This document shows, piece after piece, positions 17,562 to 50,440 of a DNA stretch of 64,000 nucleotides. Source of the DNA: Octopus bimaculoides (taxonomy: Eukaryota); the NCBI RefSeq assembly GCF_001194135.2, contig NC_069006.1:6600509-6664508 (forward strand). Reading direction: 5' to 3'. The notes under the pieces are model-generated. The model was not told the origin of the DNA and made no database searches. It worked only from the letters and a program-made list of their open reading frames with translations. The first letter of the stretch is position 1; every line of letters begins with the position of its first letter. The position numbers were made by a program, and so were the translations under genes.

Positions 17562-18170
17562 CAGGTGTAGTTGTGTGGGAAGAAGTTGGCGAACTGGCAG
17601 AAACGTTAGCACGCCGGGCGAAATGCTTAGCAGTATTTCGTCTGCTGTTACGTTCTGAGTTCAAATTCCGCCGAGGTCGACTTTGCCTTTCATCCTTTTG
17701 GGGTCGATAAATTAAGTACCACTTACACACTGGGGTCGATGTAATCGACTTAATCCCTTTGTCTGTCCTTGTTTGTCCGCTCTATGTTTAGCCCCTTGTG
17801 GGCAATAAAGAAATAAGAAGTTTGCTTCCCAACCACATTCTTCTGAATTCAGTCCCACTGTGTGACACCATGGGCAAGTGTCCACTACCAGAGTCCCAGG
17901 GCTGACCAAAGCCTTGTGAGTGGATTTGGTAGATGGAAACTGAAAGAAGCCAGTTGTGTGTGTGCCTTTGTGTCTGTGCTTGTCGTCCTCTACCATTTGG
18001 CAACTGGTGTTTACATCCCCGTAACATAGCATTTCAGCAAAAGAGACAGACAGAATAAGTACCAGGCTTACGAGAAATAGAATACAGAGGTCAATTCATG
18101 TGACTAAAATCCCTCAACGTAGTGCACCAGAATGGCTGCAGTCTAATGACTGAAGCAAGTAAAAGATATA
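17562..18170 (+). mobile_element. Family A SINE interrupted by a B1 SINE
   Basis: Head split at AAGAAGTT (17580-17587 and 17815-17822); the rest of A resumes with TGCTTCCCAACCAC. Confidence 0.9.
17588..17814 (+). mobile_element. Family B1 tRNA-derived SINE (nested)
   Basis: GGCGAACTGGCAGAAACGTTAGC head, B-box GAGTTCAAATTCC, tail GCCCCTTGTGGGCAATAAAGAAAT; 8-bp TSD. Confidence 0.9.
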
Positions 18171-18177
18171 ATGTTAC

Positions 18178-18304
18178 TGTAAAAATAAACAATCACGTCA
18201 TCAAAATCTCGAAGCCATGAGACAATGCATGATTAACTCAAAACACAGTGAAAAAATAACCATCACATTTGACAGAGGAATAAACTGAATGCTAAAAGGT
18301 TAAA
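18178..18304. mobile_element. piggyBac-like MITE, right half
   Basis: Homologous to 31315-31433; ends GAATGCTAAAAGGTTAA. Confidence 0.6.
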
Positions 18305-18432
18305 CAACAAGAGCAATGTTTCTGTTGTGAAAAACATTATTAATAATCTAGGATAGCAGCTATTTAAGTGGTCAGTCAGCAGACCCTTGGAAGATCTTGC
18401 TACAAATAGGAAACTATTCTTGATATTATATA

Positions 18433-18714
18433 ATTGTTATATTTCAGGATGATCATTTGTTCTCGTAATTTTTGCCAAATAAACACATGCACAATATATT
18501 CTTGTTCTTCACTTCAGCTTTATTATTGGTCTTATTTTAGAGTCCTGTGTCTGAAATCTTTTGTCATGCATCCTGTGACCTCTACAATGACTTCCCATCC
18601 CATGTGTCCCCTCCTGTTCTGTTTATCTAATGAAGCTGAAGTGAAGAATGAGTATAAAGTGCATGTGTTTATTTGGCAAGAAAAATGAAAATGACCGTCC
18701 TGAAATATAACAAT
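18433..18714. repeat. Long inverted repeat, probable foldback MITE
   Basis: Arms 18433-18525 and 18628-18714 are reverse complements with few mismatches; about 100-bp spacer. Confidence 0.85.
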
Positions 18715-18986
18715 ATCTGTTTCAAAACACAGCTTCACATCAGGAATCTTACAAAACAAATACATAAATGTACTACATTATTGTTTTCTATTTGCTATCA
18801 AAAAAGTTCTTAGTTCAAATCCAGCTGGCAAAGACTGACTGACTAAACACATTCATTATAAGACCAGTAGTTGAAGGAAAAATAAAAAAATACATTACCA
18901 TAAATACATTTCAAAAACATTCTAAAAAAGAAAATGATTACATGTTATTTTAAAGATTTATTTTGTTATTGTATTTGTGTTCACAG

Positions 18987-46107: not shown

Positions 46108-49100
46108 CTTAGGCAGAGAAAAACAAAATCCATAAGGTGGGGGGGGGGATATCACACACACACACACTGAAATAACAACTAGCAATCATCAGCCTCCACC
46201 CCCACCCCACCTCCAACAAATTAGAAACTGTTGATAAATCAATATTCTGCTTTATTGCAGCTTCAAAATTATTTATTTTCAAATCAAGCTCTTATTAGCA
46301 AATATGATACTTGGATAATTTGCTATTATATGCATCTGTAGTTTCCCATTAACTGCTAAAGAAATATTCCGGATGACAGTCGTACTTTGGTAAGCTATAG
46401 TGACTTGTATAGTTTTCCAATTCCAAATATTTGCAGAAATGTCAGAACAAATATTTTACAGTTAGATGCTTTTGTTGTACCAATCACTTAAAGAGAGAAA
46501 ACAGCGTTTCAGGTTTTGGATTGCTTAACTTATTTAGAGAGAATATTTACTAAGATTAAATTAACAATAGAAAATGATGATAAAAACATGAATAACAACT
46601 GTGATGGTTTCCTATAAGGTCACAAATTTATAGAAGGCAGAATTGAAATTGTGTAATTTACATACTTTTTCTCAAGAGTATTGATAGTGTAAGGGAAGTG
46701 AATTAATTTACTTCAACTAGGAACAAAAACCAACTTACAGACTTTGTTCACACAGAGCTTAAATAGACTTGCTATAATGGCATTTATCACAATAGCAACA
46801 ATAATCAAGCTCTCCCTCTCTATACACTCTGGCAACCTTGACACCTCATCACTAGCATCTTTATCTCTCTTTCCAGCTTCACACAGATTAGTCCCATCTA
46901 CTCGTGTATAATGTCAACAGCTATGTATTTCCTTCACAACAAAATACCTACTTCAGGCCCTTCCTCCATACTCCAACATTTCATCACCAACATAAAGCTA
47001 CCTCCCTCTCTACTGTAGCTCCACTCAGTTGATGGGGCTCTTACACTTGCAAGCTATATGGTGAGCTCTCTAGTGCTGATGCCACGAAAATAGTACCTAA
47101 TACACTCTGTAAAATGGTTGGTGTTACAAAGTGCAACCAACCATAAAGAAAATATGGTGAAGTACATTGTGTGGTGTTGAAACAGATTTCCTAATAGAAG
47201 GACACCACTGAGAGCCAATCAATGAATCTTACAGATCTAAGATTATACTAACTTCTCTTATCAGTGGCCAGCCTACAGTGACATGCTAAGAATCATCCTT
47301 TGTTGCCACTAGACAGAGGAAAACTGCCTCCCTTCTCAACCAAAGGAGGACAGTAAGGTATTCTGCATGATTTTTCTCAGTTGATAACCAGGTTTGTCCT
47401 CTGTATGTTTCAACAGCTGTTCAACATAGCCCCCAAGCCCAAGTCAACAACACTTGGGCACAAGACAGAGTTCATATCTCAAAGTCAGCTGGGAAAAGCT
47501 GGTCAACTAATTTTCATTGGCTCCACTTGGAAAGGAATGTGGGAGGGAGAAGAGGGAAGTGCTGCTCTCCAGACAACACAACAGTTCTATAGACAACTGG
47601 CATGAAACTGCAAAGAAAAAATAAAATGTTCCTTTGCCTTTCTTAGGCAGTAGTCAATTTTTTTTTTCCTTTTGTCACAGTGATTGATTACAGATTGTGG
47701 ATATTACATTAAGTTAACTCACAGTTATATTAATGATGTAAGGTAGTGAAAAGATTATCATCAAACACTGAAGTTAGATGTGCAGACTTGGTTCAACAAG
47801 GACATCCATCATAAATCAGGGAAGTGAGTGGTTACACACATATACATATATACACACATATGCCTATATATACACATACGTATATGAAATTAGTGTGAAA
47901 CAAGTGAGAAGTAGAATATGAATTTCTAATTTAAAAGTATGTCTCTGTTGCACTTTAGATAAACTGATAAAGTAGTGAAAGTGAAATTGTAAGCCCTGTT
48001 ATGTTTTTGTTGATTTAATTTTATTAAAGTGAACAAAAGCCAACCTATTGTAGGGAGTCGCAACATATGAATACTACATCTCACCGAAAATGGATACTAT
48101 TTGTTTGGAGAAACAACAACCAAGATATAGTCATTGAGACTAGCTGGACTGCAGCTGTTTAAGGGGTCACAAAATGGCCAAGAGATGATTGTGTTATTGA
48201 TATTTTGTGTGAAAGTAGTAAATAAAGTAGCATAGTGTTTTCTTCTTAGCCAGGGAAATTTAGCTTCAATTGAAATTGAACAATATTAATAGTATTTTAT
48301 GTTCATTTTACAACTCGTAAACATGATGAGGTGTGTACACAACTGTTTGATTGTGCAAGTAAATTAGTTTCATTAATCTAATTTTGGAGACAATTTGAAT
48401 GAACATTTTAACTAAAAGAGAAAAAGAAATTACACAGCTATCTTTTCTGATGGTTTTATAGTATTTGAGCAGAAATAGAAGCAAAGTACATTGTTTGGGT
48501 CTGGGTAAAAGTTCAACGGCAAAGACACTTGATTTCATCTGACGATACCAACAGAAAGAAATTTACTTTTGACTAATGTATAATAAGAAGCACTTTTCTA
48601 TACAAAAGGCTGAAATGATATTCTTATGGTTAGAATATGAATAAAGAGATTGAAATCAGTTTTATGAGATGACTAATCAAAATGACATATTTCAAAATAT
48701 AAACAATATTAGTACAGCATGGTGGTGAGGTGGAAGGGTGGGAAATAAAATTTAACAAATCATAGATTCTAATTCAAACTATTCAACTAACAAGTAACTT
48801 ACATTCTAACCAATACCAGACGAAATGATCTAAATATCAGTAACAATACTTCTGTCAAGAGTAGAGAATTATATATTAAATGTATTCTATCAGTAAATTC
48901 AAAAGTATATTGATAGAAATTTGGTTAGTATTCAGAGACTGAATAATTTACAGCACCCACAAGCTAATCTTTCTGAAAGCAACAGGACAAATCAGATAAG
49001 AACATTAAAGATGCACGGTGCTTTAATGTATCAGAAAGTGCATCGTGTTTGGATAAAAGCTGAAGTAGATAAACTGAATAAGTCATCGTTACAAGTAGAA

Positions 49101-49389
49101 GCATTGGCAGCCCTGTGAGAAAGTGTGTGTAAATACAAGCACATTCACACAAAGAGATACAAATACATATGTCTCTCTCCCTTTCACTATATATATATAT
49201 ATATATNNNNNNNNNNNNNNNNNNNNNNNNNNNNNNNNNNNNNNNNNNNNNTATATATATTTATATATATATATATATATATATATTTATAAACATATAC
49301 ACACATATATACATACCATACATGCATACAAATACAACCCTATAGCTCTTACATACATCACACATACCTCTAGTTAGATGAACAGATAT

Positions 49390-49850
49390 AGTTATCTATC
49401 ACACACAGGTTTGATCGATTTAACAATCACTAAACACTGATTGATCTCTATACACCAATTGACCCTTAAACATGATCAGTCAGTCAATCTCACCAATCAA
49501 GTAGGTTGAAAACTGCAGACTGATGAGTCACTACAGAGTGGTTGCTTAATCAATCACTACAAACCAATTGATCTCTACTTATCAATCAATTGGTTGATCT
49601 GTACATGCTAATCTCACTATGTATTAGTTGGTGACTAGAGACTAATTGAGTGACCACTCCCTACAAGCTGATCAATCAGTCAATCACTACAAACTAATCA
49701 AGCAGTCAATCACAGCAAACTGATCAATCAGTTTTTCAGGGCACACTGATCGGTTTGATGATCTTTACTACATACTGATCAGATTATTAATTGCTATACA
49801 GTGATAAGTTGCTGCAGGCTGATCAATAGCTACACATTGATTGATCATTT
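49390..49850. repeat. Cryptic ATCAATC/TGATCA-rich repeat with a 26-bp core unit
   Basis: Units at 49661, 49687 and 49713 (CTACAAGCTGATCAATCAGTCAATCA). Confidence 0.7.
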
Positions 49851-49854
49851 TCCA

Positions 49855-50440
49855 TACCTTTACCTTTTACGTGTTTCAGTCATTAGACTGTGGCCATGCT
49901 GGGGCATTGTCTTGAAGAAATTTTGTCAAGAGATTTTCCCCTGGTACTTATTTCTTTTTCTTAAGCCTGGTACTTATTTGATTGATCTCTTTTGCTGAAG
50001 AGCTAAGCTATGGGGATGTAAACAAACCAACATTGGTTGTGAGATAGTGGTGGGAGACAAACACACACATGATGGGTTTCTTTCAGTTTCTGTTCACTCA
50101 CAAGGCTACTGTAGGAGACACTTGCCCAAGGTGCCACTCAGTGGAACTGATCCTGGAATCATGGGGTTGGGAAGCAAGCTTCTTATTTCATTATTACCCA
50201 CAAGGGGCTAAACATAGAGGGGACAAACAAGGACAGACAAAGGGATCAAGTCGATTAGATCGACCCCAGTGTGTAACTGGTACTTAATTTATCGACCCCG
50301 AAAGGATGAAAGGCAAAGTTGACCTCGGCGGAATTTGAACTCAGAACGTAACAGCAGGCAAAATACCACTAAGCATTCCGCCCGGCATGCTAACGTTTCT
50401 GCCAGCTCACCGCTTCTTACCACACAACCATGTCTGCACC
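49855..50440 (-). mobile_element. Family A SINE interrupted by a B1 SINE
   Basis: 8-bp TSD GCTTCTTA at 50178-50185 and 50412-50419. Confidence 0.9.
50186..50411 (-). mobile_element. Family B1 SINE (nested)
   Basis: Reverse complement of the 17588 and 37206 copies. Confidence 0.9.

Follow-up and report, generated by a model that had tools for sequence, protein, structure and literature searches.

We describe the recurrent insertion of one short interspersed nuclear element (SINE) into another in a 64,000-nt stretch of the Octopus bimaculoides genome (contig NC_069006.1, positions 6,600,509 to 6,664,508 of the forward strand), referred to below as the window. Three copies of a SINE named B1 interrupted three copies of an older SINE, family A, at the same nucleotide of the A head and in the same orientation, and the junctions and target site duplications (TSDs) identified these as separate events. 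B1 was also found outside A heads, and strict specificity of B1 for A heads was not confirmed. The reading we lean towards, as the probable one, is that B1 inserts by ordinary target-primed reverse transcription and prefers a short site, so that the abundant A head is a hot spot and not an object of strict homing. On present evidence the pattern is a well-documented hot spot explained by known behaviour of target-primed reverse transcription and not a new mechanism. SINEs make up 4-12% of octopus genomes and their insertion rules in octopus are hardly described; the literature searched gave no description of SINE-in-SINE targeting in octopus.

Three B1 copies interrupt family A heads at one nucleotide

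Family A is about 375 bp long and was present in about 20 copies in the window, about 14 of them with the head retained; 13 heads were found in a second O. bimaculoides locus, L034 (described below). The A copies in the window were old, with pairwise identities of 67-78%. The consensus of the A head reads GGCGTGGCTGTGTGG^TAAGAAGCTTGCTTCCCAACCACATGGTTCCGGGTTCAGTCCC... (caret, B1 insertion site), and GG^TAAGAAG occurs at a constant position in the family, just 3' of a box-A-like motif. The box-A-like and box-B-like motifs of the A and B1 heads were assigned by eye alone (TGGCTGTGTGG and GGTTCAGTCCC, respectively, in A; GAGTTCAAATTCC in B1). A tRNA ancestry of these heads was recognised by neither the Rfam tRNA model nor ARAGORN, the Rfam model giving no hit at E<=1 in the nested B1-A region and none at E<=10 in a young A head. 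The three nested insertions (c1, c2 and c3) and their hosts (A1, A2 and A3) are as follows.

17562..18175, +, host A1, split by c1 (head 17562-17587, remainder from 17815)
17588..17814, +, B1 copy c1, 227 bp, from GGCGAACTGG... to ...GGGCAATAAAGAAAT; 2.2% from the five-copy B1 consensus
17580..17587 and 17815-17822, +, c1 TSD AAGAAGTT, 8 bp; GTT is host-private (consensus GCT)
37172..37795, +, host A2, split by c2
37206..37427, +, B1 copy c2, 222 bp; GAAAGGC start before GGCGAGCTGG, 11-bp internal deletion
37188..37205 and 37428-37445, +, c2 TSD TAAGAAACTGGTTTCACA, 18 bp; four host-private substitutions in both copies
49861..50440, -, host A3, split by c3
50186..50411, -, B1 copy c3, 226 bp
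50412..50419 (5' side of the element) and 50178-50185, -, c3 TSD TAAGAAGC (minus-strand reading), 8 bp

Each of the three copies split the A head right after ...TGTGTGG, at GG^(T/G)AAGAA, which lies directly 3' of the box-A-like motif and about 40 nt 5' of the box-B-like motif. All three TSDs were perfect, with a common start at (T)AAGAA and different ends, and the A head became continuous again in 3/3 cases once B1 and one TSD copy were removed. The orientation of B1 was that of its host in 3/3 cases. The host site sequences themselves were not identical (GAAGAAGTT, TAAGAAACT and TAAGAAGCT). The first-pass annotation of the window had reported both the interruption of A heads by B1 at one common (T)AAGAA and TSDs of 8, 18 and 8 bp that carry private bases of the host on both sides; junctions, TSDs and restored heads bore out the former, and the latter held with four private bases in c2 and one in c1.

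Three of the ten runs of N in the window (29223-29233, 30347-30356 and 49207-49251) fell between the nested sites and in none of them. The uninterrupted blocks 16766-29222, 30357-49206 and 49252-55043 each contained one nested B1, both of its TSD copies and the whole host. The closest N runs were about 600 bp from host A3 and 60 bp past the TSD of one copy of the sister subfamily B2, and no conclusion relies on continuity across an assembly gap.

The nested copies arose by independent insertion into decayed hosts

The 5' junctions of the three insertions differed: those of c1 and c3 were 1 nt apart, and that of c2 was displaced by 10 nt. Hosts A1-A3 were mutually 68-74% identical (A1 shared 74% with A2, 68% with A3 and 86.5% with the A head consensus), as compared to 90-94% among the B1 copies. 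Outside the hosts the sequences had only other dispersed repeats in common, in an order that was not colinear. Given the differing 5' junctions and TSDs, the duplication of host-private bases, the far greater divergence of the hosts than of the B1 copies and the non-colinear flanks, we conclude that a younger B1 inserted three separate times into older A copies, as the first-pass annotation had supposed. The opposite outcome, one clade of nested copies with identical junctions that moves as a composite, was excluded by the differing junctions and the unequal divergence of hosts and B1.

Within 33 kb of a draft assembly rich in gaps, the same architecture does occur three times, as a composite A-B1 unit, a segmental duplication, gene conversion or misassembly might leave it. 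The duplicated host-private bases, the differing TSD lengths and 5' junctions, the contrast in identity and the non-colinear flanks all speak against such an origin, misassembly does not create perfect TSDs around an insert, and no gap lies within any of the elements; we regard an artefact or a shared origin as extremely unlikely. We also considered a master B1 copy residing in an A head whose read-through transcript homes via its A sequence. For more than 6 nt of A sequence this was rejected, since in c2 the downstream TSD copy shows the private bases of its host and not those of a master.

At the time of duplication 5/34 TSD bases (~15%) were already off the A consensus, about the present divergence of the hosts, indicating that B1 hit hosts which had already decayed into relics. 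The description of B1 as a SINE that parasitises the promoter of another SINE was thus overstated, as the hosts were already dead when B1 arrived. As a by-product, the insertions leave the box-A-like and box-B-like motifs about 230 bp apart.

B1 copies outside A heads reveal the end of the B1 tail

Further O. bimaculoides DNA (97 kb) was found via annotated proteins that contain antisense SINE open reading frames (ORFs). It comprised L034 (76 kb, 62 kb without N, of chromosome CM046612.1, reached via protein P0002), L036 (36 kb of CM046609.1, via protein P0040) and L035 (a 543-bp scaffold, via protein P0009), none of which overlaps the window. An exhaustive profile search gave 31 hits, chiefly short Logan contigs from diverged relatives, L039 and L040 among them. 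Protein searches with the antisense SINE ORFs returned almost no matches, and close protein matches to the SINE-derived ORFs of the window were O. bimaculoides entries only.

One B1 copy was found in L034 and one in L035, both outside A heads, and L036 contained no B1. The L034 copy had the tail ...GGGCAATAAAGAAATAAATAA with the tail/TSD junction ...GAAATAAATAA^TATAAGGCCTA and the TSD TATAAGGCCTA; the tail of the L035 copy was ...GGGTAATAACGAAATAAATATA, then TTAAG, with the junction ...GAAATAAATATA^TTAAG. The O. bimaculoides protein P0001 (A0A0L8H450) reads MMYHFLFLYCPQG..., which corresponds to the B1 tail followed by non-A sequence, suggesting that the B1 behind it probably also lies at a non-A site. 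Diverged B1-type elements in L040 and L039 were at non-A sites as well, with tails ...GAAATAAAC and ...AATAAAAAAG. In total, 3/6 B1 copies were in A heads, all three in the window, as compared to 0/3 outside it. The claim that every full B1 copy lies in an A head therefore held within the window and failed elsewhere, in L034, L035, probably P0001 and the B1-type elements of L039 and L040.

The B1 copy in L034 contains a 10-N gap at 40760-40830 with the same ~58-bp sequence (gcggtatttcgtctgccgttacgttctgagttcaaattccgctgaggtcgactttcat) on either side. This duplicate points to an unmerged overlap, and to at least some short gaps of the assembly being spurious duplications.

Alignment of five B1 copies placed the common end of the element at ...AATAAAGAAATAA, i.e. 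GAAATAA. Past this point the non-nested copies went on with A/T-rich units (ATAATA, ATATAT) and the nested copies with GAAG..., which is host sequence. The first-pass annotation had matched the B1 tail to its target over AAGAA. The tails of the non-nested copies showed that this AAGAA is the downstream TSD copy; microhomology between tail and target is real, and since the tail ends in GAAATAA the true overlap is TAA (3 nt).

Site preference and occupancy of A heads

The TSDs of B1 began with TAAG..., (T)AAG..., TAAG..., TA-TAAGG and T-TAAG, so that 5/5 readable starts were at or within 2 bases of (T/G)AAG. B2 TSDs began mostly with AAT, ATT or ATAT (AAT, ATT, AAT, CAAT, ATAT, AATAT and AATATA). 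In these small numbers the first TSD bases matched the end of the tail and differed by subfamily, B1 ending in ...ATAA and B2 in ...GAAAAG(AAT), and each subfamily had its own loosely preferred TSD start. For RTE-type SINEs and long interspersed nuclear elements (LINEs), the opening bases of the TSD have been linked to microsatellite-like tails (PMC6007223).

Motif shares and occupancy were determined in about 159 kb of pre-insertion sequence (the window plus the further O. bimaculoides loci). The share of each motif that falls in A heads rose with motif length:

TAAG, 2% of sites in A heads
[TG]AAGAA, 4% of sites in A heads
TAAGAA, 10% of sites in A heads
TAAGAAG, 35% of sites in A heads

B1 occupied [TG]AAGAA at 3/17 sites in A heads as compared to 0/379 elsewhere (Fisher p=7e-5), and TAAGAA at 2/16 as compared to 0/145 (p=0.009). 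The comparison of A heads with other sites of the same hexamer thus came out in favour of A heads, with a signal that stems wholly from the window. Under uniform insertion, about 14 heads per 62 kb give a chance of about 2e-4 per event and make coincidence negligible; motif-matched nulls within the window gave probabilities for 3/3 of 1e-5 (TAAG sites) and 1e-3 (TAAGAA sites). As the window was chosen for this pattern, its p-values are optimistic.

Most motif-bearing A heads were empty (14/17, with 3/17 occupied), including 8/8 further TAAGAAG heads in L034 and L036. Unoccupied copies included:

33786..34213, +, A copy with intact GG^TAAGAAG, an example of an empty site
35953, 55516, 63524 and 6676(-), other unoccupied A copies with intact GG^TAAGAAG
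12049-12204(-), 38512-38673(+) and 55365-55495(-), unoccupied A copies in the window with TAAGTAG at the B1 site
24102, 54985(-) and 73116, unoccupied A copies in L034 with TAAGTAG at the B1 site

The TAAGTAG carriers were the youngest A copies (92-96% identity to the head consensus). Occupancy by B1 was 0/6 for TAAGTAG heads and 3/17 for TAAGAAG-type heads, a difference that is suggestive of lower occupancy and not significant.

Proposed mechanism and alternative explanations

In the mechanism we propose, B1 would be a ~230-bp Octopus SINE with an RNA polymerase III (Pol III)-type head, a conserved core, a LINE-type 3' region and an A/T-rich tail ...GGGCAATAAAGAAATAA(ATAA...), copied into the genome by the enzyme of a LINE through target-primed reverse transcription. 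A first nick would fall just 5' of (T/G)AAG on the strand destined to carry the element, the freed ...CTTA-3' end would prime the cDNA by pairing with a UAA unit of the tail, and a second nick 5-18 bp downstream would give TSDs of variable length and constant start. The constant start and variable end of the TSDs, from a nick position common to all three insertions, are as expected of target-primed reverse transcription with a sequence-directed first nick and an undirected second one. The A head would recur as a landing site in one orientation owing to the abundance of A, which supplies about a third of TAAGAAG and a tenth of TAAGAA sites and is the most frequent carrier of an extended match. 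On this account c1, c2 and c3 are separate hits on old, mutated A copies, and B1 also enters TAAG-like sites elsewhere. We infer that the preference is set by the endonuclease or by primer pairing, that a partner LINE is involved and that context beyond the hexamer may contribute; the partner LINE would have ...GTTTAGCCCCTTGTGGGCAATAAAGAAAT... at its 3' end.

Several observations weigh against this explanation. The B1 sample comprises six copies, one of them known as protein only (P0001), and enrichment was seen only in the window (3/3, as compared to 0/1 in the 97 kb of unselected DNA, or 0/5 with the ORF-found copies). Hexamer-matched sites outside A were never occupied, so that the short motif alone may be insufficient for the preference; the excess would also allow for recognition of more than the hexamer. 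B1 never occupied the other AAGAAG of family A, which lies in its body (CTGAAAGAAGCC), and one B2 TSD begins with AGTG, which shows that the preferences are loose. The B1-specific 3' part matched only B1 copies in the 159 kb, with no partner LINE, in a sample too small to find a LINE.

The same empty hexamer sites would be expected if B1, or its youngest subfamily, were moved by a target-specific LINE (e.g. Tx1-like or Dong/R4-like) whose endonuclease recognises the extended A head ...TGTGTGG^TAAGAAGCTTGC..., the non-A copies being off-target or older. The identical nucleotide and orientation in three events fit such homing, as does the lower divergence of the nested copies (2-5% from the consensus, as compared to 8-10% for other B1 copies), although the five-copy consensus behind this dating is skewed in favour of the nested copies. 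Recent activity of L1-Tx1 and Dong-R4 LINEs has been described in O. vulgaris (PMC13282606), and a precedent exists in SINEU-3, found 90% at one Mariner-N4_AMi site through Tx1-Mar LINEs (PMC4494074). True homing is nonetheless hard to reconcile with half of the B1 copies lying elsewhere and with the empty motif-bearing heads, among them all 8 outside the window. The differing host sites would require a recognition that tolerates changes on either side of the nick, and no target-specific LINE was found in the 159 kb. We therefore consider homing unlikely, if the most serious of the competing accounts. Its fullest form, in which a young B1 lineage is truly site-specific via a LINE that recognises A heads and the TAAGTAG subfamily of A might be an escape variant in an arms race between two non-autonomous elements, appears to us rather improbable. 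If it were true, about one fifth of motif-bearing A heads, probably tens of thousands genome-wide, would have a split Pol III promoter.

A longer match between tail and target could also produce a common site. If a young B1 lineage had the tail end ...GAAAUAAGAA, six bases would pair with TAAGAA at the nick, as in the microhomology model of the first-pass annotation, and B1 copies ending ...GAAATAAGAA would be predicted at non-A, non-TAAGAA sites. The end of P0001, ...HFLFLYCPQG, translates back to a tail ...GAAATAARAA with non-A sequence after it, as would fit an element that includes TAAGAA and lies at a non-A site. Its codons are ambiguous (R may be A), however, it is a gene model that is perhaps spliced, and in the nested copies the end of the tail and the start of the TSD are indistinguishable. 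Every B1-type copy with DNA read at a non-A site had GAAATAAA and not GAAATAAG, and we give this reading little chance. The position between the box-A-like and box-B-like motifs would suit an integration machinery drawn to A heads bound by TFIIIC/TFIIIB or free of nucleosomes, as the first-pass annotation had entertained, and retrotransposons aimed at Pol III genes are known (reviewed in PMC5911963). Elements known to target in this way insert outside the gene, however, and not at one internal nucleotide in one orientation; the hosts were ~15% mutated when hit, as judged from the TSDs, and an exact common nick beside TAAG is what a sequence rule predicts. Chromatin targeting is accordingly unnecessary as an explanation, disfavoured and very unlikely.

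Comparison with known insertion systems

The closest parallel is SINEU-3 and Tx1-Mar of crocodilians, where 313/347 SINEU-3 copies (90%) lie at one Mariner-N4_AMi site, which is explained by the target preference of the mobilising LINE, whose own copies have that target too (Kojima 2015, PMC4494074). As in that case, B1 inserted repeatedly and independently at one position and in one orientation within an abundant, decayed transposon family. In the small sample here, however, only 3/6 B1 copies were at the common target, not the great majority, and no partner LINE with the same target was identified. The SINEU-3 target is a DNA transposon, whereas that of B1 is the promoter region of another SINE, and the SINEU-3 head is derived from snRNA whereas the B1 head is putatively tRNA-like.

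In RTE-type SINEs and LINEs the TSD start correlates with the microsatellite-like 3' end, which has been read as a dependence of the cleavage site or of priming efficiency on the RNA tail (Nishiyama and Ohshima 2018, PMC6007223). B1 resembles these elements in that its first TSD bases match the tail repeat. The RTE-type pattern is a base preference of a general nature, with T about 10 nt downstream of a stretch of T, and not a hot spot in a named repeat, and the A-head site has no upstream T stretch. Sequence-specific LINEs of the Tx1 and R4/Dong groups include Tx1L in Tx1D, Keno in U2 and Koshi in (TTC)n (cited in PMC4494074). They share with B1 the insertion of a non-LTR element at one sequence in multicopy targets, including transposons and purine-rich microsatellites, and the AAGAAG of the A head is two (AAG)n units, or (TTC)n on the other strand. 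These LINEs are strict, however, whereas B1 is not.

Ty1, Ty3 and the TRE elements of Dictyostelium integrate at set distances outside Pol III genes. They resemble B1 in having targets with Pol III promoter-like motifs. Their integration upstream or downstream of the gene proceeds via protein contacts, whereas B1 used one internal nucleotide beside a fixed motif in decayed copies, and not a set distance outside a gene independent of local sequence.

If the preference holds genome-wide, B1 would be a SINE that lands chiefly in the promoter of another SINE. Repeat libraries could then include false composite families, and estimates of the age and copy number of A and B1 could be skewed. The preference would also help to identify the LINE behind B1 and would add a mollusc case to the few SINEs with a known target preference.

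Families B1 and B2 and other features of the window

The window has a G+C content of 35% and is AT-rich with many repeats. Family B was represented by nine copies, comprising the three B1 copies (~227 bp), four B2 copies and two older relatives. B1 was 222-227 bp long, dispersed and multicopy, with TSDs of 8, 18, 8 and 11 bp (the three nested copies and L034); B1 and A thus share with SINEs a short length, dispersal in many copies and TSDs of variable length. B2 consists of B1 positions 1-163 followed by a different tail, ...GTAGAAAAG, i.e. ...GAAAAG(AAT). Its sites were unrelated to the A-head site, in agreement with the first-pass annotation on both tail and location. The four B2 copies are:

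28943..29151, -, B2 copy, tail ...CCTTGTGCCTAGAGTAGAAAAG, TSD AATT(C/T)GTGTAAGG
38106..38306, +, B2 copy, TSD ATT(A/G)TTTAACACACTCA
40074..40285, +, B2 copy, TSD AATATTTGAGTCTAGT
56780..56989, -, B2 copy, TSD CAATATATCC

In L034 two B2 copies lay head to tail at 66034-66260 (minus strand), the 5' end of one meeting the tail of the other at a common AATATA. By analogy with the tandem insertions of SINEU-3 (PMC4494074), this pair looks like repeated use of one site.

B1 positions 81-131 form a 51-nt core of the B family (GTTCAAATTCC...CTTTCATCCTTTCGGGGTCGATAAA) that was matched at 84-88% in environmental metagenome contigs (L004 78-128 and L020 6537-6587). Metagenome, prokaryote-genome and viral collections scanned for exact patterns otherwise yielded no octopus DNA, only chance hits or this core match. 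The core resembles the SINE core domains that different phyla have in common (PMC4758252). The 3' regions of B1 and B2 each contained a hairpin with a common loop, GCCC-CTTGT-GGGC in B1 (~17785-17806) and GGC-CTTGT-GCC in the B2 tails (e.g. 38280-38300), with two stem pairs swapped. The hairpins were minimum-energy folds, yet no better than those of shuffled sequences; they may be a LINE recognition element. The 51-nt core, for its part, may be Nin-DC/Deu.

A LINE 3' fragment at 57851-58848(+), unrelated to B, contained an ORF resembling the C-terminal part of a reverse transcriptase (57851-58165) and ended in ...GTTAAATGA(TGA)n. The tail of an old B-family copy at 58850-59058(-) adjoins this (TGA)n end; one of the two inserted at the end of the other. 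A tail related to that of the LINE fragment was present at ~41016-41400 and overlaps the sole ARAGORN call, a tRNA-SeC at 41321-41418, which is probably a false positive within the repeat.

Outside the window, the coding sequences of two O. bimaculoides genes annotated as 'uncharacterized proteins', LOC106868243 (L034 10001-66298) and LOC128248735 (L036 10001-25991), were partly antisense B2 SINE, suggesting that both are probably spurious or SINE-exonised gene models.

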